From positions 1-9,616 of IMG/VR virus record IMGVR_UViG_3300005964_000002: a DNA stretch of 9,616 nt; one strand, 5' to 3'. A program made the translations under genes and the position numbers. Position 1 is the stretch's first letter, and every line of letters starts with the position of its first letter. Shown piece after piece: positions 1 through 9,616 of this stretch. The notes beneath the pieces are model-generated. The model did not search any database and was not told the origin of the DNA. It saw only the letters and a list, made by a program, of their open reading frames with translations.

Positions 1-80
1 CTTTCTTAGCATCATCCCCTCCAAATGGAGTAATGCCTTCAAATTCTCAGCCACAAAAAACAATAGTTCTAATAGGATGA
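1..80 (+). CDS. 3' end of upstream gene, probably the large rudiviral terminal-fibre protein (SIRV2 ORF1070-like); partial
   Basis: Open frame from position 3 (FLASSPPNGVMPSNSQPQKTIVLIG) ends in TGA at 78-80, 7 nt before the ATG at 88. Identity is inferred only from recalled SIRV gene order (1070-564-158b-309). Confidence 0.5.
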   Translation, partial: FLASSPPNGVMPSNSQPQKTIVLIG

Positions 81-87
81 TGTAGAA

Positions 88-1470
88 ATGTTTGCAGTAA
101 CTAATATAACATTTTCATTCCCCTGTCAGTCAGTTTATCAAATTGCTAATTTATTATCTTCTCCAACTAAATATTCATTAATTTCATCTTCCTTATGGAA
201 CGAAATAGTAAACGATTTATACTTAACTTACAGTGTTTTTAAATATATTAACTATTTATCTCAATATCCATATCCAGAATATATACAGCCCGCAATTGAT
301 GAATTTCTTAATTTTCCTTATCAATTTACGCCTTATCCATTTACGTCTCTATTGATTGCACAAAAAGGAATTCCTCTCACTGCAAATGATTTTAATAAAC
401 TTATTGATGCAATTGTAGAATTAGCTAACGAATTTGATATTCAACTAAAAACACAACTAAGTCACGTTCAACATGATCAAATTGTCAAATCTTCACAATT
501 TTCAAATGTAATTTATGCAATAAATCAATTATTAACTTTCGACTATAATACTTACTTTCTTTTAAGTTGCTCAGGTTATGAATTCAGAAACTTACTAAAT
601 ACACAAAATACATTTTTGAATGTGTTAATTGGAATTTTAAATACAGCAATAACTATATCACATAACACTTATGTTAAAAATTTACTTATATACAATTCGA
701 AATATTCTATATCTATTTATGGATCTATCGGCACAATAGCAATGGAAATAGACAATGGTGGAATATATTTACATAATTAAAGTTCAATTGAAAGAATTAA
801 TATAAATCAAGAAGAAATAGGAATTTATTTGAACAATAATCCTTATGTTAATTCTATTAATATAGGAACTGATAATGGAGGAATGTATTTATATAATTAC
901 GGTTCAGTTGAAACAATTAATATAAATCAAGAACAAATAGGAATTTTTTTGCATAATAATTTTTATGTTAATTCTATTAATATAGAAACTGATAATGGTG
1001 GAATATATTTACATGATTACAGTTCAGTTGAAAGAATTAATATAAATCAAGAACAAATAGGAATTTATTTGCATAATAATTCTTATGCTAATTCTATTAA
1101 TATAGGAACTGATAATGGCGGAGTACATTTACATGATTACGGTTCAGCTGAAACAATTAATATAAATCAAGAAAATAATGGAATTTATTTGGACGATAAT
1201 TCTTATGCTAATTCTATTAATATAGGAACTGATAATGGCGGAATATATTTAGATATTTATGGATCAGCCAATATAATCACTATACAAACCGAAAATGCCG
1301 GTGTGTATTTAAATGACAACAATTATGTAAAGACTCTATATATAGAAAATAATGTTGGAGGAATATATTTATATAATAATGCGATAATAGAAAATTTAAT
1401 TTGTAAACAAAATTCTGGAGGAGTATATGTTTTTGGAAATGCGAAAATCATAAATAATCAGTGTGCCTAA
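88..1470 (+). pseudogene. Rudiviral minor structural protein (SIRV2 ORF564-like) with C-terminal beta-solenoid repeats; 460-codon frame interrupted by a single in-frame TAA at 778-780
   Basis: ORFs 88-780 and 829-1470 share a frame, and 781-828 is open (SSIERININQEEIGIY). The TAA sits where later repeat copies have TAC/TAT (898-900, 1018-1020, 1138-1140, 1258-1260). Position upstream of the convergent 158-aa methyltransferase matches SIRV synteny. Confidence 0.75.
751..1260 (+). repeat. Coding tandem repeat: 120-bp (40-aa) unit of two 60-bp subunits; 4 full copies (781, 901, 1021, 1141), a partial copy at 751-780, and degenerate copies to about 1440
   Basis: Directly visible: 'attaatataaatcaagaa' and 'attctattaatatagRaactgataatgg' recur every 120 nt. 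Protein unit is xSxExININQExxGIxLxxN-xYxNSINIxTDNGGxxLxxY. Confidence 0.97.
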
Positions 1471-1494
1471 TTTCAAATTTATAATTTGAAATTA
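1468..1494. terminator. Perfect 12-bp inverted repeat between convergent genes (possible bidirectional terminator or RNA-end structure)
   Basis: taatttcaaatt-tat-aatttgaaatta overlaps the stop at 1468-1470. Very AT-rich, so function is uncertain. Confidence 0.35.
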
Positions 1495-1590
1495 TTTCTA
1501 TAACTTTTAAGTTTATAATTTTGAATTTGCATATATTCGGTCTTAATTCTAAAGTAAAAAGTTCTAAATTTGACCTCATAATGCATCTAA

Positions 1591-2067
1591 CTATAATTTA
1601 CAAAATACAAATTCTTTATTATCATCGGTTATGAAAGTCAAAATTGTTCCGTAAAGTTTTTTCATTAACCCAAATCTATTTTCTGTCCAATCATGAATAG
1701 CTATACAATATTGTTTATATTTCTGTAATTGAGAAAAATCTAAGTTCTTTTCGCATCCTTCACAATCCATAACTAAAATGTCAGTATTTGGATATTCTTT
1801 ACCAGACCATCCCCCATGAATTTCAACTTTATCACAAATATTAAATTCTTTACAAACTTTTTCTTTAAATCTCCTGTTTAACTCATCACTTTTTTCAAAA
1901 CCAATAATTTTCTTTGCATCTTTTAACAAAAAGTATAAAGCTGAACTTCCACAATCATTTCCAATTATCGTAATTGTTTTATCTTTTACATCTAATTTTC
2001 CATAAGCTAAATCAAATTCATGCCAATAACAACATTGCAATTTACAGAAATAATCTTTATAATCCAT
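1591..2067 (-). CDS. SAM-dependent methyltransferase (FkbM-like; SIRV ORF158b-like)
   Basis: Motif I-like ITIIGNDCGSSALYFL, KKIIGFE, and DILVMDCEGCE (FkbM K-x-D-x-E-G-x-E-like). Shine-Dalgarno AGGTGA at 2077-2072. 158 aa. Confidence 0.85.
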   Translation of the reverse strand: MDYKDYFCKLQCCYWHEFDLAYGKLDVKDKTITIIGNDCGSSALYFLLKDAKKIIGFEKSDELNRRFKEKVCKEFNICDKVEIHGGWSGKEYPNTDILVMDCEGCEKNLDFSQLQKYKQYCIAIHDWTENRFGLMKKLYGTILTFITDDNKEFVFCKL

Positions 2068-2087
2068 AGGATCACCTAACTACAAAA

Positions 2088-3017
2088 TTAGGGACTAATA
2101 ACTTCAAATAATGCATAAACTTTACATTTTCCAGTTGCCCATGCGTAAATATTACTAGGATTATTCACATGTATCTCCAAACTATCATTTTGCAAAATTG
2201 GGAAATTATTGTATAAATTATTTCCAATGTAAACTATGTAGTTACTCAAGTTTTGTAATATTATTCTTACAGTTTCAATAGAGGGACCTGAATAAAGTGG
2301 AGAAGGAAATGTTGAAACATCAAGTTGAAGGCCTTGAATTGTTGGAGGACTTAAGTACAAACCGAGTTTATTAATTGTATTTGCTAAACCGACAGTCGCT
2401 AAATAAACATATCCAAGTACATATTCTAAAGAATCAGCAACAAAATATATTGCATTTTGTAACGAAATTCCTAATCTTTTAGCTATTGAATTTATAGTTT
2501 CATAAAATGAAATATAGAAATTCTGTAAATCTTCTTTTATTATAGTTCTAGATTGTTCAATATTTGAAATTAAATAATTTACGACATTATAAATTGTTTC
2601 GTATAAAGCAATTGTATCTTTCTCTAAAATTGAAGTTGCAGTAGGAACAGCAACTACAATTTTTTCATAAATTTCTTGAGGAAGTTTAACAATCGAATAG
2701 TACAATTGTTCATTTGAGTATAAAATTGAATTTATTTGTTGATTTGCAGTTGCTATAAAGCCTGCAATATAAATTGGATCAAGTTCAGTTAGCACAGGCT
2801 GACCCGCAACATAAACCTCATCATAGAAAAATCCAGAATCTGCAGTTATTGAATTTGGAACTGTAAGATTCCCATTTTTCAGAATTGAAGTAACTGCATT
2901 TCCTCCAGTTTCATACAATTGAATTAGCAAAAGTGATGCAGTGTTCCACATACTAGAAGTTAGTCTTTGGAATGGTGACGCAAGTAATTCGCTAATTGAA
3001 GTATATGTAACGCTCAT
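2088..3017 (-). CDS. Conserved rudiviral 309-aa protein (SIRV2 ORF309-like), possibly virion-associated
   Basis: Long ORF co-oriented with the methyltransferase, 20-nt gap. GTC promoter motif lies 19 nt upstream of the ATG. Central helical region and beta-rich C-terminal domain (RIILQNLSNYIVYIG). Confidence 0.8.
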   Translation of the reverse strand: MSVTYTSISELLASPFQRLTSSMWNTASLLLIQLYETGGNAVTSILKNGNLTVPNSITADSGFFYDEVYVAGQPVLTELDPIYIAGFIATANQQINSILYSNEQLYYSIVKLPQEIYEKIVVAVPTATSILEKDTIALYETIYNVVNYLISNIEQSRTIIKEDLQNFYISFYETINSIAKRLGISLQNAIYFVADSLEYVLGYVYLATVGLANTINKLGLYLSPPTIQGLQLDVSTFPSPLYSGPSIETVRIILQNLSNYIVYIGNNLYNNFPILQNDSLEIHVNNPSNIYAWATGKCKVYALFEVISP

Positions 3018-3032
3018 ACTATTTTTATCTAA

Positions 3033-3047
3033 TCATGACCTAAAAAA
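3033..3047 (-). promoter_or_regulatory. Rudiviral GTC-type promoter of the 309-aa gene
   Basis: Minus strand reads TTTTTTAGGTCATGA; GTC (3039-3037) is followed by 19 nt and then the ATG at 3017. Confidence 0.7.
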
Positions 3048-3060
3048 CTATTCACAACTA

Positions 3061-3078
3061 ATTCATAATATTATGAAT
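3061..3078. promoter_or_regulatory. Perfect 18-bp palindrome between divergent promoters (candidate operator)
   Basis: attcataatattatgaat equals its own reverse complement. Confidence 0.4.
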
Positions 3079-3118
3079 ATAGCATGTTCTCATTGATCTT
3101 ACCAGAAATCAAGATAAC

Positions 3119-3133
3119 TAATATTTGTCATAA
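3119..3133 (+). promoter_or_regulatory. Rudiviral GTC-type promoter of the glycosyltransferase operon
   Basis: TAATATTTGTCATAA; GTC (3127-3129) is followed by 19 nt and then the ATG at 3149. Confidence 0.7.
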
Positions 3134-3148
3134 CTTGAGAAGAATATT

Positions 3149-3754
3149 ATGAAGATTTTCACATTTGCGGGATTTACAAAACATCTAAAGGAATTGGATT
3201 TTGATTATGTCGTCTTGGATAAGACATTTAATGATATAACTCCCCAGTTAATCGAAAAATTTAAAGAAAAGATAATCTGGAATGAAACAAATAGTGATAT
3301 AAGACCTGTAAGAATTGCGAAACAATTGCTAAAAATTCTAGAGACAGCGAAAAAATTAGATGATGACATATTCGCTATAGTAGATAGTGATCTAATTGTT
3401 CCAAATTTGAGAAATATTGACCCTCAGGATGAAATATTGACTTTGTGCTATTGGCTTTATTATCCATGGGTTAATGAAATAAGACCATTCTGTTCAGGAA
3501 CAAATTATATATTTAGGAAAAATCATATTCCAATTTTTGAAATTATATTAAATGCTTATCTTGATAAACAATATTATGAAGAATTTCCAGTTGATATATT
3601 TCTACATGACCATATTCTTCACGTAAATGTTCTAAAATTAGGAACTATTCATTACGTTAAAACTCCAGAAGGAGAGAAAAAAATGGAATTTACTTGGAAG
3701 GATATAAATCAAGTATTTAAGCATATTCCTGAAGTTGTATTAATAGCATGGTAA
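3149..3754 (+). CDS. Putative GT-A-fold glycosyltransferase
   Basis: DxD motif after a hydrophobic strand (IFAIVDSDLIV) and a CSGTNYIF segment; directly upstream of a GT-B enzyme, as in rudiviruses. Confidence 0.7.
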   Translation: MKIFTFAGFTKHLKELDFDYVVLDKTFNDITPQLIEKFKEKIIWNETNSDIRPVRIAKQLLKILETAKKLDDDIFAIVDSDLIVPNLRNIDPQDEILTLCYWLYYPWVNEIRPFCSGTNYIFRKNHIPIFEIILNAYLDKQYYEEFPVDIFLHDHILHVNVLKLGTIHYVKTPEGEKKMEFTWKDINQVFKHIPEVVLIAW

Positions 3755-3773
3755 AAAATAAGGTGATATATAA

Positions 3774-4835
3774 TTGGAAAAACCGATTTATTACGTTTAT
3801 CCTCAACATCATGACGTTTCTTTTAAGTTTGTAGCAAAAGAACATATAAAAATGTTAAGAGAAAAATATACAGTTTACGAAATTCCGGCTTTATCATTTT
3901 ATCAATTTACACCTTTCAAATATCCAATTTCCATAATTCATCCGTTCTTTTATAGTATGTGGCATTGGGGCAATGTTGAATTTTCTTTCTTTAAACAGTA
4001 TAGATCTAGAGTTAGTCAGATTATTGGAATTGAAGTGGCCGATAGTGATAGAATTGCAGAGAAATTTATTGAATATGGAAATAATTATGCTGACAAAATT
4101 GTTGTAAATTCTGAATGGTCAAAAAATGCATTTATAAACTCAGGTTTAAAGATTCCAATATTTAAAGTAGTCCATAATTTCAATTCTAGACTTTTAGCGA
4201 AAGATGAGGAATTGAAAGTTGATGACCAAGTTAAGTATATTGAAAAAGTTAAAAATGAAAAGAAAATTAAGTTAGTAATGATATCGTTATGGCATTCCGA
4301 CTTTAGAAAAGGGGCCGATTTATTTCATGTTATAGCAAAGGAAATACAAAAAGAAAGAGATGATATTTATTTCCTAGTAAAATCAGGAGGACCTAGAACT
4401 GATTTTCAAGACTTGAAAATGTTTAATCTCACTGGAAATACAGACTTTGATAATATTGTAAAAATGTATAGAATATCAGATTTATATTTATTAACTTCAA
4501 GAGGAGGAAGTTTTGAACTTAATGGACTTGAGGCATTTGTTTCCAAAATTCCGACAATTGCCACAAAAGGCGGGGCATGGGAAGAATATTTTCCTAATGC
4601 TTTGAAAGATTTACTAATTAATTCATGCAATTCACCAGTGATTCTTCCAGGAAACCCAATTCATATAGGCAAAGGTGTGGAAATATGTATAAATAACACA
4701 ATAGATAAAATATTAGAAGTTATAGATAAATTAGATGAATATAAAGCACGAATTGAGGAGAATTATAATTTCTGGTTAGAAAATTTCAGTTATAATGCAG
4801 TAAAAAAACAACTTTTCAATGTCTTAACTTTTTGA
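3774..4835 (+). CDS. GT-B glycosyltransferase (GT4 / Glycos_transf_1)
   Basis: Motifs ADKIVVNSEWSK, RKGADL and SDLYLLTSRGGSFELNGLEAFVSKIPTIAT. TTG start with Shine-Dalgarno AGGTGA at 3761-3766. Confidence 0.92.
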   Translation: MEKPIYYVYPQHHDVSFKFVAKEHIKMLREKYTVYEIPALSFYQFTPFKYPISIIHPFFYSMWHWGNVEFSFFKQYRSRVSQIIGIEVADSDRIAEKFIEYGNNYADKIVVNSEWSKNAFINSGLKIPIFKVVHNFNSRLLAKDEELKVDDQVKYIEKVKNEKKIKLVMISLWHSDFRKGADLFHVIAKEIQKERDDIYFLVKSGGPRTDFQDLKMFNLTGNTDFDNIVKMYRISDLYLLTSRGGSFELNGLEAFVSKIPTIATKGGAWEEYFPNALKDLLINSCNSPVILPGNPIHIGKGVEICINNTIDKILEVIDKLDEYKARIEENYNFWLENFSYNAVKKQLFNVLTF

Positions 4836-5177
4836 TAAAAGTTCAACAATTTGTTTTAATAATTCTGTATTTTCTCCTCTTTCTGTACCAATTACTTCAC
4901 TAACAAATTCATCAATCTTCAATAATTGTAAAGTTCTTTGAATTATCGAAACTGAAAATTTATGAGTTTGTTGAACTATCTGAAAGATCTTTTTCGCTAT
5001 TTTTTCAGCATTAAATTTGTTATATTCAATTATAAGAGAAACATTGCTATATTTCGCTATGACTCTTTCATTTTCAATACTTATGATAAGCTTATATTCA
5101 TTATCTACAACTATTTCGGCCTTATTATTGCTAATTCTGACTATAGTATTTTCACTTAACTTTAAATTGTTATTCAT
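4824..5177 (-). CDS. Hypothetical protein, 117 aa (start revised from 5243 to 5177, MNNNLKL...)
   Basis: Promoter AAAAAAATATATACGTCATAA places GTC 20 nt upstream of the ATG at 5177. The longer start at 5243 falls inside the divergent promoter motif. Overlaps the GT stop region by 12 nt. Confidence 0.75.
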   Translation of the reverse strand: MNNNLKLSENTIVRISNNKAEIVVDNEYKLIISIENERVIAKYSNVSLIIEYNKFNAEKIAKKIFQIVQQTHKFSVSIIQRTLQLLKIDEFVSEVIGTERGENTELLKQIVELLSKS

Positions 5178-5193
5178 GATCAACTGATAAGTT

Positions 5194-5214
5194 TTATGAC
5201 GTATATATTTTTTT
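5194..5214 (-). promoter_or_regulatory. BRE/TATA plus GTC promoter of the 117-aa gene
   Basis: Minus strand reads AAAAAAATATATACGTCATAA, with GTC at 5200-5198. Confidence 0.7.
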
Positions 5215-5230
5215 ACTTTTATCATAAGCA

Positions 5231-5245
5231 TTAAATTGGTCATAA
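5231..5245 (+). promoter_or_regulatory. GTC-type promoter of the transporter-TGT operon
   Basis: TTAAATTGGTCATAA; GTC (5239-5241) is followed by 19 nt and then the ATG at 5261. Confidence 0.7.
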
Positions 5246-5260
5246 AATCGCATCCATAAT

Positions 5261-6451
5261 ATGGAATTCCAAAGAAAAACTTCAGGAGTTATAAAAAGTT
5301 TTAATTCTCTAGATATTTTTTCAATAAATCTTTTATACATGGGAATTTTAAGCGGTATAAGTTATCCTCTTTTTGTCTCAAGTCTTCTAAAATCTGTAAA
5401 CTTGTTATTTGCAATTTTGATAGGTGCAATTTTTGAAATTCCGCTTTTAGTAATGTATTACACACTAACTAAAAAAATTCCGTTAAACGGAGGCGATTAT
5501 GCGTATATTCGTTCTACATTTTCGCCAAAATTCTATACAATTTTCGGAATTTCACTCTGGCTAATTTACGTATTTTCTGCACCAATATTAGCTGACCTAG
5601 TACTCCTAAATTTCAATATTCCAGTAATTGATAAGTTCTTTATTTCAGAAATGTTATTCGCTATTGCTTTGTTCAGTATAGTTAAAAAGTCAATTTATGC
5701 ATATTTAGTAGACGGATTAGCAATTTTACAAATAATTGTTTCTGTAATTCTGCCAATCTCAAGTTTTCATTTTCAAGTCCAAAATTTCACATTATCAAAC
5801 ACCTTACTTTCAGCTTTACTATTTGATTTGTCTATGTTTTTATTTCTAAATGCAATTAGTTATATTGCAGGGGAAACAAAAAATGTGAATAAAAATATGA
5901 AAATTGGTTATTTCATAAGCTATGTAGTAGTTACCATATTAGCGATATTAGATAGTTATTCGAATCTAAACATATTATTTATGTTAATGCCGATATGGTT
6001 CATGAGTTATATTTTTATAACTACACTAATCCAAAGTCGATTAGTGCAAAATCTTGCATTTGATAAAATCTTACCTGAGAAATTTGCAAAAATATCGCCA
6101 AATGCCTTACTATTGATCTTTATCGGTGATACTATTACAAATATTCTAGAAAATTTGTTAAACTTTTCAATTTCATTTGGATTTGATGGCTTATTATTTA
6201 TTTTCTGGAATTTCATAATTGTTAGTTTTGCATTTCTCAGATTAACCAATAACAAATTGATATTTTCTACTGTATTAATTAGCTTAGCTTTACAAATTTT
6301 CCTATTTTTCTATCTAGGCATGCAAAATCAAGTATTTTATAACTTTGTGATTGAAGGAAACGCAATATATATAATACTAAGGATATTAATAATGCCAATT
6401 ATAGGAGGAATTATTTACTTATTGAGGAGAAAAGTGATAAATGTTGAATAA
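5261..6451 (+). CDS. APC-superfamily (amino acid permease-like) membrane transporter
   Basis: About 11-12 hydrophobic segments; APC signatures IPLNGGDYAYIR, ISYIAGETKN and LAFDKILPEKFAKI; N-terminal FQRKTSGVIK typical of archaeal APC permeases. Confidence 0.9.
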   Translation: MEFQRKTSGVIKSFNSLDIFSINLLYMGILSGISYPLFVSSLLKSVNLLFAILIGAIFEIPLLVMYYTLTKKIPLNGGDYAYIRSTFSPKFYTIFGISLWLIYVFSAPILADLVLLNFNIPVIDKFFISEMLFAIALFSIVKKSIYAYLVDGLAILQIIVSVILPISSFHFQVQNFTLSNTLLSALLFDLSMFLFLNAISYIAGETKNVNKNMKIGYFISYVVVTILAILDSYSNLNILFMLMPIWFMSYIFITTLIQSRLVQNLAFDKILPEKFAKISPNALLLIFIGDTITNILENLLNFSISFGFDGLLFIFWNFIIVSFAFLRLTNNKLIFSTVLISLALQIFLFFYLGMQNQVFYNFVIEGNAIYIILRILIMPIIGGIIYLLRRKVINVE

Positions 6452-6453
6452 AA

Positions 6454-7356
6454 ATGAAATTAATATTTGGATTAAGTTCAAGATCAACTTATCTATTAAA
6501 AACTAATTTTCCAGTTTTAATTAATCAATTGAAATTTAGAAAAAAAGAATGGAAAAATGAGACATGGGTAGATAGTGGAGGCTATCAAATTCTATTACAC
6601 GGTTTAGAAATTTCTGTAAAAGATGTCCTGAAGAAGTACAAAAAGATAGATGCATATGCGTTTTTTTCTCTCGATATTGCTAGCGTTTTTTCTCCTTTGG
6701 ACAAACGAAATTTTGAATATTTTGAATATTTGTACACAAAAATAGAATGGTTAGAAAAAATTATACCAGTGATACATATTTATCCAATTCAAGATATAGA
6801 TGAGGCAATTGATTTTTATAAACAATATACTTATTATTTTTCAATTGGTGGACTTGTGGCATCTAGCAAAATGAAAGTTTTAATTTATACATTTCCATGG
6901 GTTTATTACTTAAGAAAAAAAGTTCCATATCTTCACGTTCTCGGAATGCCGGCACCGTATTTTCTTCAGACGTTCAATTTTGCTAATAGCATGGACACAG
7001 CAACTTACAGTAAAATAACCGGATTTAGAGATATATTTTGGTTTGATGGATCTAGAAGATATGTCGGAAATATGGAAACGAGAAGAAAAAGATGTAAAAT
7101 CACAAAAGAAGAAAAAGAACAATTGTTTGAATTCCTAGATAAACATAATTTTCCTTTTGAATATGACTTGAGCAATAGAAAAATTATAGAACTTATAAAT
7201 GCTTACATTTTATTCTATAATAATTGGAGAATAAAGAATAAATATACAGAATATGCAGAAAAACTTAGAAAAATGGGGCTAGATAATTTAGTAAATGAGT
7301 TAATTAGGAACTATAAATTTGCAAGTCAAATATTAAAACAAAAAAGAGAAAAATAG
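6454..7356 (+). CDS. tRNA-guanine transglycosylase-family protein (TGT/DpdA-like)
   Basis: TGT motifs WVDSGGYQ, FSLDI, IIPVIH, FSIGGLV, LHVLG and NSMDT. Starts 2 nt after the transporter stop. No obvious CxCxxC zinc motif or PUA tRNA-binding extension. Confidence 0.88.
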   Translation: MKLIFGLSSRSTYLLKTNFPVLINQLKFRKKEWKNETWVDSGGYQILLHGLEISVKDVLKKYKKIDAYAFFSLDIASVFSPLDKRNFEYFEYLYTKIEWLEKIIPVIHIYPIQDIDEAIDFYKQYTYYFSIGGLVASSKMKVLIYTFPWVYYLRKKVPYLHVLGMPAPYFLQTFNFANSMDTATYSKITGFRDIFWFDGSRRYVGNMETRRKRCKITKEEKEQLFEFLDKHNFPFEYDLSNRKIIELINAYILFYNNWRIKNKYTEYAEKLRKMGLDNLVNELIRNYKFASQILKQKREK

Positions 7357-7474
7357 ACGATAAAAAATACAATAGTCAATAATTTGTACCAATTTTTAAC
7401 GATTAAAAATCTTAATTCAAATAAGTTATCCACTTTTTGTCACCGAAATAATGAAAAATATAAACTTATAAAAG

Positions 7475-7494
7475 AAAAATTAAAAAGTCAAAAA
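7475..7494 (+). promoter_or_regulatory. GTC-type promoter of the DndC-like gene
   Basis: AAAAATTAAAAAGTCAAAAA; GTC (7487-7489) is followed by 20 nt and then the ATG at 7510. Confidence 0.6.
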
Positions 7495-7509
7495 TAAACC
7501 ATATTTCAT

Positions 7510-8724
7510 ATGTCTCTTAGATTGTCTGAAGATCCCAAAGTTCATGAAACATTCAATGTATTCGATAGCCTGAAGGACAGGAAAAACTATGTCATAGCGT
7601 TTTCAGGCGGAAAAGACTCAACAACACTTTCTATTCTTTTCTATGAATGGTTAATTTCCAGGAATCAGAAGGGAAAGCATGTGTTCTTTGTTCACAATGA
7701 CACCGAGTCGGAATATGATGTTCTAGAGGATTATGCAATCAATTTCCTTCATGAGATCTGTGAAAAGATCAATGAATCGGGTAATCTATGTATAAATTAC
7801 ATTACGAAACCTAAAGGAAACTTTTACTGGAAATCTATATTTTTGGGATATGTAGCACCCACAACTAGTTTCCGCTGGTGTATTTATGACCTGAAGGTCT
7901 CACCAAATAAAAGAAGTTTAAAAAATTTAATTAAAAAATATGGTGACTTAGTACTATTCACAGGTCATAGAGAAAATGAATCGATAGCAAGAAAAGTGAC
8001 AATGAAAAAGTATTCATGTGGATTAGATTCTATGGATTGTGCAAGTGCTTTTTATCTCAATGTCTCAATGAAAAATGTAATTAAAGTGGCACCAATAAGA
8101 AAATGGGATCTTGAAGACGTTTGGAAATATTTAAGATCAAAAAGGGGAGAATTCAACATAGATACATTATTTGATGTAATGTATAAGAATACTAGTTCTA
8201 GATGGGGATGTTGGCATTGCACTCTAGTAAAAGTACAGAAAAGTGTATATAACTTAGACGAAAAATATTTTCCTCTGGAGGCTTTAAGAATACTTTACAG
8301 AACAATATCAGATCTCGAAAGATTCAGATTACGAAAAGATTGGGGATACTCGAAACTAGGCGCCCTATCGCCAAAGGGAAGAGCAATACTCATGTATGGA
8401 ACAAAAGTTATAGAAAATATAGGAATAAAATTGTATGGATTAGACTTCAAATTAGAGGGAACCCATAGCTTAAGAGAAATCATGTTTGAGCTAGATGAGG
8501 ACATAGCAGACAGGGAAGTCATGACCATAGCTAAGGAATTGAAGTCAAAGACTAGTCGTATCATTCCGATAGGTGTGCTTAGAGGACAAAGAATGACCAA
8601 AACGGATGAAGAAGTGATACTTCACATGGCGGAAAGCAATGTTTCCCTTAACGTTTTAAAAATTCATTCTACAAAGGATCATTTCAAGGATCTTGTCCAC
8701 AATATTAGAAATGAGATGAGTTAA
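7510..8724 (+). CDS. dndC: DndC/TdpC-like DNA phosphorothioation sulfurtransferase (PAPS-reductase / PP-loop adenylyltransferase fold, probable Fe-S)
   Basis: PP-loop AFSGGKDST; NDTESE; DndC-typical FYWKSIFLGYVAPTTSFRWCIYDLKVSP; TGHRENESIAR; APIRKWDLEDVWKYL; SRWGCWHCTLV; C-terminal LGALSPKGR. Confidence 0.8.
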   Translation: MSLRLSEDPKVHETFNVFDSLKDRKNYVIAFSGGKDSTTLSILFYEWLISRNQKGKHVFFVHNDTESEYDVLEDYAINFLHEICEKINESGNLCINYITKPKGNFYWKSIFLGYVAPTTSFRWCIYDLKVSPNKRSLKNLIKKYGDLVLFTGHRENESIARKVTMKKYSCGLDSMDCASAFYLNVSMKNVIKVAPIRKWDLEDVWKYLRSKRGEFNIDTLFDVMYKNTSSRWGCWHCTLVKVQKSVYNLDEKYFPLEALRILYRTISDLERFRLRKDWGYSKLGALSPKGRAILMYGTKVIENIGIKLYGLDFKLEGTHSLREIMFELDEDIADREVMTIAKELKSKTSRIIPIGVLRGQRMTKTDEEVILHMAESNVSLNVLKIHSTKDHFKDLVHNIRNEMS

Positions 8725-8730
8725 AAAAGA

Positions 8731-8988
8731 TTAGCTTGTTTTCTTATATTGCTCTATAAAATTGGCTAACCTTTTAAGAAAAACCTCAAAATTATAACTT
8801 ATATAGGGATATTTACTTGCACTTTGTAAATCCTTGTAAAAATCCTCTATATCCTCTTCTTTTAAAACCTTTGAATATGATAAAAGGTAATTAAGATAAA
8901 ACTCATCAGCACCGGTTGTTGGATGAAGATTGTATAATTCTGTTACAATTTCGTTTTTTAACTCCTTAAAGTCCTTCTTAAAATTCAT
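8731..8988 (-). CDS. Small helical hypothetical protein, 85 aa (start revised to MNFKK...)
   Basis: Shine-Dalgarno GGTGAT 6 nt upstream of the ATG at 8988; starts 2 nt after the stop of the upstream HTH gene. Confidence 0.8.
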   Translation of the reverse strand: MNFKKDFKELKNEIVTELYNLHPTTGADEFYLNYLLSYSKVLKEEDIEDFYKDLQSASKYPYISYNFEVFLKRLANFIEQYKKTS

Positions 8989-8990
8989 TT

Positions 8991-9164
8991 TTAAATCACC
9001 CAGCAATCTTCCATCATTTTCTTTACTTTTCTTTCCGAAATATTTAAAAAATTGGCTATTTGTTGAACTGTGTAGCCCTTTCGGGCTAACTCATGAGCTA
9101 TGCTTATTAAATCGACTTCATCTTGCACGTAATATTTTACGCCTTCAACTTGGACGACTCTCAT
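8991..9164 (-). CDS. 57-aa HTH DNA-binding protein, homolog of SIRV1 ORF56a / SIRV2 gp1
   Basis: Manual translation MRVVQVEGVKYYVQDEVDLISIAHELARKGYTVQQIANFLNISERKVKKMMEDCWVI*. Classic HTH (GYTVQQIANFLNISERKV), closely resembling my recollection of SIRV gp1. Not in the ORF track. Confidence 0.9.
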   Translation of the reverse strand: MRVVQVEGVKYYVQDEVDLISIAHELARKGYTVQQIANFLNISERKVKKMMEDCWVI

Positions 9165-9199
9165 TTCTGTATCACTATCATTTATCTTGTAGTCAGCCC

Positions 9200-9213
9200 T
9201 TAATAAAGTTTTC
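9200..9213 (-). promoter_or_regulatory. BRE/TATA promoter candidate for the HTH gene
   Basis: Minus strand reads GAAAACTTTATTAA, 35 nt upstream of the ATG at 9164; canonical archaeal type without GTC. Confidence 0.5.
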
Positions 9214-9263
9214 TCTATCTTTTTACCTTTATAGCTTACGCCGTTTTTCTTATAAAAATATAT

Positions 9264-9425
9264 TTAATCTTTATATTTCTTTTTTAACATTCTAATTAAT
9301 TCTTCTTCTTCAATCCGTTTCATTTCCTGTCTTAATTCCAATAAGAAAAAGAGAAATAATAACTCATAAAAAAATCCAACAATAACTATAAGCCATGTTG
9401 GATCTAGTGATGCATTTAAATCCAT
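9264..9425 (-). CDS. 53-aa single-pass membrane protein with charged C-terminal helix
   Basis: Manual translation MDLNASLDPTWLIVIVGFFYELLFLFFLLELRQEMKRIEEEELIRMLKKKYKD*; Shine-Dalgarno GAGGT upstream. Not in the ORF track. Confidence 0.75.
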   Translation of the reverse strand: MDLNASLDPTWLIVIVGFFYELLFLFFLLELRQEMKRIEEEELIRMLKKKYKD

Positions 9426-9440
9426 ATTTTCATACCTCAG

Positions 9441-9616
9441 TTATACTTTTTCATTAATAATTTTATCTAACTTATGATTGAATTTTGCTTTTATCTCATC
9501 AGGACTCAGCAATTGATAGACTTCATCACTGAGAAGTTCAGATATTATATCTATGTTTTTTTCTTCTAAATTTTCAAAAATACACTCGTCCAGATATCGA
9601 TCTTCATTAAGTATAT
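9441..9616 (-). CDS. C-terminal part of an acidic hypothetical protein (starts outside the window)
   Basis: Open frame ...ILNEDRYLDECIFENLEEKNIDIISELLSDEVYQLLSPDEIKAKFNHKLDKIINEKV* ends in TAA at 9443-9441, just before the next gene's Shine-Dalgarno. Confidence 0.7.
   Translation of the reverse strand, partial: ILNEDRYLDECIFENLEEKNIDIISELLSDEVYQLLSPDEIKAKFNHKLDKIINEKV

Follow-up and report, generated by a model that had tools for sequence, protein, structure and literature searches.

Introduction

DNA-backbone sulfur marks, or phosphorothioate (PT) links, are used by cells as a label of self, and the sulfur is inserted by enzymes of the DndC/TdpC type. Canonical DndC (of DndABCDE; TIGR03183) requires DndD/E (PMC12707154) and is often associated with dndB and dndA as well, while in archaea a PT-linked antiviral system, DndCDEA-PbeABCD, with a multi-protein writer, is found in haloarchaea (PMC6459918). 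A single-protein writer was described only in 2025: TdpC of the TdpABC system of thermophilic bacteria, for which tdpC alone is reported to suffice for PT synthesis (PMC12914056, citing An et al. 2025, Nat Chem Biol 21:1160; primary paper PMID 39820821). On the viral side, phage "PAPS reductase" homologs have been proposed, and in one case reported, as anti-Dnd genes that promote evasion of Dnd (PMC13551039, citing Piel et al. 2022).

Here we examined a stand-alone gene of this type in a rudivirus, a rod-shaped virus of hot-spring archaea. The window, i.e., the whole stretch of DNA that was analysed, comprises positions 1 to 9,616 (9,616 nucleotides) of IMG/VR record IMGVR_UViG_3300005964_000002. 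A sequence-only reading of it had proposed that an intact 404-aa ORF carries the DndC-clade motif set without any PT partner gene beside it, that such a gene is not part of the SIRV1/2 core, and that the virus captured a host self-marking enzyme to phosphorothioate its own genome and pass as self, with a decoy that poisons the host PT complex or protection from oxidative damage as alternatives.

Results

To test whether the ORF and its motifs are as proposed, we first translated the locus and searched its product against profile libraries. The ORF runs from ATG to TAA with no internal stop, and all of the proposed motifs were present: SGGKDS (aa 32-37), GYVAPTTSFRWC..LKVSP (aa 113-132), GHRENESIARK (aa 152-162), PIRKWDLEDVWKYL (aa 195-208) and SRWGCWHCT (aa 230-238), with residues that are invariant or nearly invariant across 34 family members. 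The features of the locus are as follows.

7510..8724 (+): intact 404-aa ORF of a DndC/TdpC-superfamily PP-loop enzyme, a candidate single-protein DNA phosphorothioation writer
7603..7620 (+): PP-loop SGGKDS (aa 32-37), the ATP pyrophosphatase/adenylation motif, invariant in 34 family members and aligned with TdpC and DndC
7870..7881 (+): FRWC (aa 121-124), with invariant Cys124
8017..8040 (+): Cys170-x6-Cys177 dyad, shared with true TdpC and with phage/cyanobacterial ~400-aa relatives and absent from canonical DndC; Cys present in 32/34 family members
8206..8223 (+): GCWHCT (aa 233-238), with invariant Cys234 and Cys237
8422..8721 (+): predicted helical C-terminal extension (aa 305-404), specific to the archaeal family, absent from TdpC and unrelated to the DndC C-terminus; less conserved than the rest (mean top-residue frequency 0.45 against 0.61)
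7357..7509 (+): AT-rich intergenic region upstream of the ORF with TATA-like strings (for example TTAAAAAG 23-30 nt before the ATG), read directly from the sequence as a presumed promoter and not statistically distinguishable from background
7395..9000 (no strand): lineage-specific segment that carries the ORF, between the conserved TGT-like gene and the conserved terminal-proximal rudiviral region, with the highest GC in the window (0.33-0.34 against 0.22-0.30 elsewhere)

The match to this superfamily was far above chance (Pfam PAPS_reduct, 3e-14; NCBIfam DndC, 3.7e-35; PADLOC DndC, 1.6e-37). The protein belongs to the PP-loop ATP pyrophosphatase/PAPS-reductase superfamily (PF01507, 53.8 bits against a cutoff of 22.5), and DndC models scored 122-129 bits, compared to 34.5 bits for SspD, 46.8 bits for BrxP (DndC in the same search, 127.6) and 30.1 bits for cysH. 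Its AF2 model (pLDDT 88.6) predicted a PAPS-reductase/TtuA-like fold for aa ~20-245, with Foldseek hits to APS/PAPS reductases, TtuA and FAD synthase at E from 3.5e-6 to 1e-4. PDB sequence searches (single sequence and profile) and the Foldseek search found no solved DndC or TdpC in these libraries, only the generic PAPS-reductase, TtuA and FAD-synthase folds, and a viral structure library gave only phage "PAPS reductases".

We next asked whether the gene has partners and whether it is a regular part of rudiviral genomes. None of the other ORFs in the window hit a Dnd, Ssp, Brx, Pbe or Tdp partner or a cysteine desulfurase. tblastn against 50,697 phage and archaeal-virus records found only bacterial phage hits at 24-31% identity and no rudivirus, such that the gene is indeed not in the SIRV1/2 core and most rudiviruses do without it; no sequenced phage, archaeal virus or plasmid record carries a close homolog. 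The gene immediately upstream (6454..7356), which the sequence-only reading did not mention, is a TGT-like gene matching a queuine tRNA-ribosyltransferase family (phrog_887, 2e-65). The small convergent downstream ORF (8731..9006) is specific to rudiviruses and was rejected as a conserved partner.

To examine whether the location is real, we compared the surroundings of the ORF to related genomes. The genome is Usarudivirus-like, and its match to SIRV4-11 ends near 7357-7394 and resumes near 9000, thereby delimiting a ~1.6 kb lineage-specific segment. Both junctions were reproduced, with sequence divergence, in seven independent contigs from other datasets at 84-97% nucleotide identity, one of them a single 6.9 kb alignment on a 28 kb contig, and the rudiviral copies were monophyletic (97/100). 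An assembly chimera or host contamination, for which only the high GC of the gene speaks, is thus refuted. Taken together, the observation made from the sequence alone is confirmed.

Having established that the gene is genuine, we proceeded to determine its place within the superfamily. As TdpC reference we used loci L095 and L134, validated because neighbours of TdpC match the PDB chains named TdpA and TdpB (8wet) at 7e-104 and 4e-118. By profile scores and trees the protein grouped with DndC/TdpC-type enzymes and not with metabolic PAPS/APS reductases or FAD synthetases, yet in a separate, third clade: in IQ-TREE, TdpC plus TdpC-type (96/98), the archaeal family (97/95) and DndC (84/81) formed an unresolved trichotomy. 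The protein is neither canonical DndC nor TdpC in the strict sense. Against TIGR03183 it scored 121.7 bits, below the cutoff of 290.4, matching only profile positions 11-257 of 447, though the core motifs FRWC, GxRxxES..R, PI..W and GCWxC are invariant alignment columns. It also lacks the cysteine dyad in the insert just before GCWxC, described as unique to DndC (PMC12839542): no Cys was found in that region in 34 of 35 archaeal family members, while 54 canonical DndC have two. Instead, Cys170 and Cys177 align with the Cys-x6-7-Cys dyad of the TdpCs in L095 and L134, a dyad counted in 35/35 archaeal members, 2/2 TdpC and 39 TdpC-type proteins. An iterated HMM search with annotated DndB, D, E and A probes hit 0 of 16 archaeal loci, compared to DndD in 29 of 48 canonical loci, and TdpA/B probes hit only L134, L095 and L114, no archaeal locus and not the window.

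We then examined the genomic contexts of the relatives. A scan of genome contigs returned mostly bacterial DndC and missed the Sulfolobales genomes, and so cellular contexts were obtained by exact-protein look-ups. Every cellular member examined sat beside an SF1 helicase and a PD-(D/E)XK protein, in Stygiolobus caldivivus, Saccharolobus shibatae and five metagenomic contexts (L137-139, L140, L146, L147/148 and L158), the chromosomal relatives in Stygiolobus, S. shibatae and metagenomes being 42-50% identical to the viral protein. One complete cassette, L158, has a writer 81% identical to the viral protein and 93% identical to another orphan copy, and it comes from the same metagenome as L151, a 28 kb contig of a related rudivirus; neither the window nor L151 contains a helicase or nuclease. 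However, L158 sits on a ~47% GC contig whereas the virus is ~27% GC, and the low-GC cellular systems, which are most like a plausible host, share only 42-47% identity with the viral enzyme, and so a matching of target motifs remains unproven.

The Sulfolobales helicase and nuclease are not homologous to TdpAB. PDB searches with them gave no Tdp-named chain, only Upf1/Sen1-type P-loop hits and chance primase hits, and no known defence model covered them beyond weak partial hits, so that a PT-sensing role for them is a guess. In four islands, including L158, a P-loop ATPase (~585 aa) and a ~350-aa protein are conserved nearby, and these could be required modification partners that the virus lacks. 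They had no PADLOC, Pfam or NCBIfam hit that would make them Ssp-like, and the AF2 model of the ATPase was poor (pLDDT 56). The three-gene cassettes in S. shibatae, at around 144.9-149.5 kb of CP077713.1, and in L137-139 lack this pair.

Orphan copies of the writer were found on rudivirus, bicaudavirus-like, pRN1-type plasmid-like and unknown elements, with GC from 0.35 to 0.55, and are under strong purifying selection (dN/dS 0.05-0.10 over the whole protein). No avoidance of 4-mer palindromes, including the GATC reported for Tdp, was seen, though the power of this analysis is low.

Discussion

The interpretation offered by the sequence-only reading is partly supported. The computational tests it had named came out in its favour, namely the grouping of the protein, the restriction-like neighbourhoods of its nearest cellular homologs and the exclusion of a chimera. 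Nevertheless, PT formation by this family is an inference by analogy, the cellular partners are not TdpAB, DndFGH or PbeABCD, so that the supposed host PT defence is itself uncharacterised, and the idea is less new than was implied, given the phage precedent.

We suggest, with moderate confidence, that the ORF encodes an orphan phosphorothioation writer used for anti-restriction. In this view, and by analogy with TdpC, an active PP-loop, cysteine-rich enzyme would bind ATP through SGGKDS, adenylate a non-bridging backbone oxygen of DNA and replace the AMP with sulfur held by its conserved cysteines (Cys124, 170, 177, 234 and 237, probably an Fe-S or persulfide site), the sulfur coming from host metabolism. 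In cells, where close relatives are the only modification-type gene of their cassettes, the helicase and nuclease would presumably form a restriction module that spares marked DNA, and the virus, carrying the writer alone, would mark its replicating genome and pass as self. The gene would have entered the rudivirus lineage once, into the variable terminal region, from a pool of nearly identical genes that circulate among Sulfolobales viruses, plasmids and defence islands. Our analysis demonstrates the family membership, the intact catalytic motifs, the purifying selection, the orphan status, the cassette context and the real viral location, while the PT chemistry, the autonomy of the enzyme, restriction by the cassette and protection of the virus are inferred.

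An alternative, which we consider unlikely, is that the enzyme does make PT or a related backbone mark on viral DNA, but for another benefit: general nuclease resistance (against CRISPR-Cas or other host nucleases, or the host-DNA degradation that rudiviruses trigger) or protection from oxidative or thermal damage. PT links resist nucleases and can act as antioxidants, the spread of orphan copies over very different elements suggests a benefit not tied to one host system, and no palindrome is avoided. Against this, the helicase and nuclease beside every cellular member examined are the signature of a modification-restriction pair and not of a stress function, and most rudiviruses lack the gene. 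Slightly less likely still, the viral protein may not be autonomous, acting as a decoy or dominant-negative subunit or recruiting host partners, for example the ATPase and ~350-aa pair, to redirect the host's marking machinery to viral DNA. The conservation of that pair in four islands and the dependence of canonical DndC on DndD/E speak for it, whereas the invariant catalytic residues and low dN/dS, which a pure decoy does not need, the three-gene cassettes without the pair and the lack of DndD/E homologs in the 16 archaeal loci speak against it.

Another substrate, i.e., RNA or tRNA thiolation or a step in a 7-deazaguanine pathway with the adjacent TGT-like gene, is less likely again. Fold matches do include the tRNA thiolases TtuA and NcsA and also TilS, but the TGT-like gene is conserved in SIRV4-11 without this ORF and is absent from every other locus carrying the ORF, the two co-occurring nowhere outside this rudivirus lineage. 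Furthermore, similarity to DndC/TdpC is orders of magnitude stronger than to TilS or LarE, and the cellular partners act on DNA. A metabolic PAPS/APS reductase or FAD-synthetase-like auxiliary gene, suggested by the Pfam and PHROG names, is very unlikely given the cysH score of 30.1 against a cutoff of 165.1, the PAPS_reductase score of 19.7 against 254.2, the lack of an ECGLH-type C-terminal motif and the tree.

More broadly, and only tentatively, a lineage of rudiviruses, along with bicaudavirus-like viruses and plasmids of Sulfolobales, may encode a single-protein PT enzyme and sulfur-mark their genomes to defeat a previously undescribed Sulfolobales restriction system built from a TdpC-type writer, an SF1 helicase and a Cas4-like PD-(D/E)XK nuclease. 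If true, this would be the first virus-encoded DNA backbone modification in archaeal viruses and would define a new PT-dependent defence family, with non-homologous restriction parts swapped onto a shared writer. If active, the enzyme would show that archaeal viruses and plasmids steal the sulfur label much as phages steal methyltransferases, and would provide a compact, thermostable, one-gene PT writer for study. The comparative data further point to the helicase-nuclease cassette of Stygiolobus, Saccharolobus and uncultured relatives as a candidate new PT-dependent defence system, whose natural counter-measure would already be in hand, making the virus-host arms race in Sulfolobales, where few defences beyond CRISPR have been demonstrated, directly testable in existing laboratory strains.

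In comparison with known systems, canonical DndC is the best HMM match and shares the catalytic motif set, but differs in its dyad insert, its C-terminal region and its partner genes. TdpC shares the PP-loop core, the FRWC and GCWxC motifs and the extra dyad between the GxRxxES..R and PI..W motifs; it is likewise compact (367 against 404 aa), occurs in thermophiles and is the only modification gene of its cassette, and the two align over aa 25-302 at 27% identity (E = 2e-25). Yet the hhalign profile score to the TdpC-type group (270) is lower than to DndC (380), TdpA (HerA/DUF87) and TdpB are absent, and the archaeal family has its own ~100-aa C-terminal extension. DndCDEA-PbeABCD is also archaeal, PT-linked and antiviral, with a DndC-family writer, but its Pbe proteins are unrelated to the SF1 helicase and PD-(D/E)XK pair. 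Phage orphan DNA methyltransferases follow the logic proposed here, a solitary writer without a cognate nuclease marking invader DNA as self, with a base methyl group in place of a backbone sulfur and no homology. Finally, phage-encoded "PAPS reductases" (phrog_12882 and phrog_424; for example Pseudomonas phage Dobby/phiC725A, Rhizobium phage RR1-A and Thermus phage Tsatsa) are stand-alone genes in variable regions of viral genomes with the same proposed role, and their ~400-aa group on IMG/VR contigs carries the TdpC-type dyad; they share only 24-31% identity with the rudiviral protein and belong to bacterial viruses, whereas the archaeal-virus copies form their own clade and a near-identical copy of their writer sits inside a full helicase-nuclease cassette.

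An intact DndC/TdpC-like reading frame

To examine whether the gene proposed by the sequence-only reading is genuine, we first translated the region and searched its product against profile and structure libraries. The observation held: the reading frame is an uninterrupted ATG-to-TAA ORF of 404 amino acids, and every motif that the sequence-only reading had listed is present in it:
7510..8724 (+), the ORF, 404 aa
aa 32-37, SGGKDS
aa 113-132, GYVAPTTSFRWC..LKVSP
aa 152-162, GHRENESIARK
aa 195-208, PIRKWDLEDVWKYL
aa 230-238, SRWGCWHCT

Pfam identified PAPS_reduct at 3e-14, and NCBIfam identified DndC (TIGR03183) at 121.7 bits and 3.7e-35, though only over profile positions 11-257 of 447 and below the 290-bit cutoff. 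The PADLOC models gave DndC at 1.6e-37, compared to 3e-13 for BrxP and 4e-9 for SspD, while the cysH and PAPS-reductase models scored only 20-30 bits against cutoffs of 165-254. An AlphaFold model built on 34 relatives was confident (pLDDT 88.6), and its first ~245 residues matched APS/PAPS reductases, TtuA/NcsA and FAD synthase, whereas the helical C-terminal part matched nothing; no DndC or TdpC structure was found in the libraries searched.

Genomic location of the gene

We next asked where the gene sits in the viral genome. The window is a Usarudivirus-like contig, with positions 1-7394 and about 9000-9616 matching SIRV4-11 from Yellowstone at roughly 76-87% nucleotide identity, and positions 7395-9000 matching no sequenced virus. 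To the left of the ORF, the gene order is that of SIRV10 (SAM methyltransferase, glycosyltransferase, permease-like gene, TGT-like gene), yet in SIRV10 the slot following the TGT-like gene holds unrelated small genes. None of 50,697 phage and archaeal-virus records, and no sequenced plasmid, encodes a close homolog. The ORF also has the highest GC in the window (0.345, compared to 0.22-0.30). Other features of the window are as follows:
5261-6451 (+), an amino-acid-permease-like membrane protein
6454-7356 (+), a TGT-like gene (phrog_887 queuine tRNA-ribosyltransferase, 2e-65), without a Pfam, NCBIfam or PDB sequence hit
754-1327, a tandem array of a 120-bp (40-aa) unit, 4.3-4.8 copies at 85-89% match
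88..780 and 829..1470, two ORFs, the array spanning the end of the first and most of the second

The TGT-like gene and the permease-like gene are conserved as a pair in SIRV4-11, and the former could be a DpdA-like DNA or tRNA transglycosylase. The two ORFs at the tandem array both match the C-terminal part of the same rudiviral protein family (phrog_10791/14297), which is a single 511-aa gene in SIRV10; this looks like a repeat-variable structural or fibre-like protein, here split into two ORFs.

Seven contigs from other datasets were collinear with the window (IMG/VR contig 3300005964_000002) across both junctions at 84-97% nucleotide identity, one of them as a single 6.9 kb alignment on a 28.2 kb rudivirus contig (L151). 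The gene is therefore truly viral, and the objection that it is an assembly chimera fails. In one further rudivirus-like contig (L157, 898-2644) the gene, 84% identical at the amino acid level, is inverted and relocated to a different slot among the small terminal genes, showing rearrangement of the terminal variable region. All rudiviral copies form one clade (97/100), which indicates a single acquisition followed by vertical divergence.

A third lineage of the DndC/TdpC superfamily

Having established that the gene is viral, we proceeded to characterize its protein family. A search of 5.8 billion proteins returned only 34 relatives; against the family profile, members scored at least 490 bits, while the best bacterial DndC-like protein scored 256. 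A TdpC reference was obtained indirectly. In a Thermus contig (L134), the genes next to the DndC-like gene match PDB chains named TdpB and TdpA (8wet) at 4e-118 and 7e-104, respectively, though the TdpC gene of this draft contig (Thermus sp. JCM 17653, 1394-2424) is split over two frames (139 aa and 282 aa), owing either to a sequencing error or to a frameshift. An Armatimonadales locus (L095) has an intact TdpC (367 aa) followed by TdpB-like and TdpA-like genes. TdpA is a HerA/DUF87 ATPase.

In a maximum-likelihood tree, three clades met in an unresolved trichotomy: TdpC together with phage and cyanobacterial proteins of about 400 aa (96/98), canonical DndC (84/81) and the archaeal family (97/95). 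Profile-profile comparison placed the archaeal family at least as close to DndC (score 380) as to the TdpC-type group (270). One structural signature cuts the other way: all 35 archaeal members, both TdpCs and 39 phage or cyanobacterial proteins have a Cys-x6-7-Cys dyad at positions 170/177 of the window protein and no Cys before GCWxC, whereas the 54 canonical DndCs have the opposite pattern, which is the dyad described as unique to DndC (PMC12839542). Homologs of DndB, D, E and A were absent from all 16 archaeal loci, while DndD was found in 29 of 48 canonical loci. The protein is therefore a third lineage of the DndC/TdpC superfamily, with a TdpC-like cysteine layout and its own ~100-aa C-terminal extension.

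The comparison also drew attention to two groups outside the archaeal family. A large clade of ~400-aa phage-borne 'PAPS reductases' on IMG/VR phage contigs (L006-L028) shares the TdpC-type dyad and groups with true TdpC (96/98), and these may be single-protein PT writers of tailed phages. In addition, a cyanobacterial locus (L108, Leptolyngbya; 9872-11125 and 13841-15490) and a locus from an uncultured bacterium whose writer groups with the cyanobacterial ones (L131; 9905-11134 and 14792-16399) each carry a TdpC-type gene and a canonical DndC-type gene within 5 kb, with DndD nearby.

Cellular relatives lie beside a helicase and a nuclease-like protein

To learn which genes accompany the cellular relatives, we inspected their neighborhoods. 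Wherever a relative sits in a long cellular contig, it is flanked by an SF1 helicase (ResIII/AAA_11/AAA_12, 518-543 aa) and a PD-(D/E)XK, Cas4-like protein (620-693 aa). This holds for:
Stygiolobus caldivivus (L003; AP024597.1, 1382354-1403550)
Saccharolobus shibatae (L005; CP077713.1, 134898-156070)
contigs L137-139
contig L140
contig L146
contigs L147/148

Pyrobaculum has a different large helicase next to the gene, and more distant relatives of the pair a few kb upstream. In three contigs (L137, 9184-10732; L138, 1875-3423; L139, 2376-3924) the helicase is called as two pieces (104 aa and 361 aa), which may represent a disrupted restriction gene next to an intact writer. The partners showed no similarity to TdpA or TdpB and gave only weak partial hits to known defence models, and no PADLOC system model covers the cassette. 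We suggest that this recurrent and apparently undescribed combination of a TdpC-type writer, an SF1 helicase and a Cas4-like PD-(D/E)XK protein, found in the loci listed and in contig L158 (described below), is a candidate new PT-dependent restriction system of Sulfolobales.

Four islands also hold a P-loop ATPase (~585 aa, Walker A GRGKT, Walker B DEFE) and a ~350-aa protein, neither with a family hit. The coordinates of this second module, which include a short SspD-like PAPS reductase where there is one, are:
L003, 15292-19379
L140, 5654-6448 and 13068-15891
L146, 6762-10493
L158, 3003-5797

In three of the four, these follow a short SspD-like PAPS reductase (~260 aa), while L158 has the ATPase and the 347-aa protein without it. 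This second module may be an Ssp-like writer module, or may supply accessory factors of the 400-aa writer.

Link between the viral gene and the cassette

The viral protein belongs to a tight sub-clade (100/100) that is sister to the Sulfolobales chromosomal clade. Its members are stand-alone genes on rudivirus contigs, on a bicaudavirus-like contig (L141, with SMV3, SMV4 and YNP1 matches), on a pRN1-primase plasmid-like contig (L002) and on unidentified small-gene elements (L142-145). Gene GC in these copies runs from 0.35 to 0.55, and pairwise dN/dS is 0.05-0.10. The same sub-clade contains L158, an 11.2 kb contig of ~47% GC, whose writer is 81% identical to the viral protein and 93% identical to the L142 orphan and lies in a complete cassette with the PD-(D/E)XK protein, the SF1 helicase, the ATPase and the ~350-aa protein. 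L158 and the 28 kb rudivirus contig L151 come from the same metagenome, and a rudiviral copy (L156) and a three-gene cellular cassette (L138) likewise share a metagenome.

Interpretation

The evidence best fits an orphan writer used for anti-restriction, and the inference of the sequence-only reading, namely that the virus captured a host self-marking enzyme to phosphorothioate its own genome and pass as self, is partly supported. What the analysis itself establishes is that the catalytic residues are intact, that the gene is under strong purifying selection, that it occurs as an orphan in at least four kinds of mobile element and that a near-identical copy lies inside a writer-helicase-nuclease cassette; the PT chemistry, by contrast, is inferred by analogy with DndC and TdpC, no direct assay supporting it in this clade, and the restriction role of the cassette is a guess. 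tdpC alone is reported to make PT (PMC12914056, citing An et al. 2025), yet the ATPase and its ~350-aa companion may be a required partner of the writer. In addition, the 81% relative sits in DNA of much higher GC than the virus, and so a match between the target of the viral enzyme and that of a cassette in the true host is conjectural.

Of the alternatives considered, a different benefit of PT (nuclease, CRISPR or stress protection) remains possible. A pure decoy is unlikely given the conservation. A link to the TGT-like neighbour is not supported, since that gene, itself highly divergent, is conserved in SIRV4-11 without the ORF and is absent from all other loci with it; the small downstream ORF, too, is not a conserved partner. 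A metabolic PAPS-reductase role is excluded by the HMM scores and the tree.

Relation to known systems

No paper was found that links rudiviruses to phosphorothioation. PAPS-reductase homologs, however, have been noted in archaeal viruses and plasmids (PMC11437467, refs 52-54), and phage copies have been proposed as anti-RM or anti-PT genes, one of them being cited as promoting evasion of Dnd (PMC13551039, citing Piel et al. 2022). The proposed role is therefore already on record for phage genes, and what our analysis adds to these precedents is a distinct archaeal clade with TdpC-type cysteines, its spread as an orphan gene through Sulfolobales viruses and plasmids, and its tie to an uncharacterised helicase-nuclease cassette.
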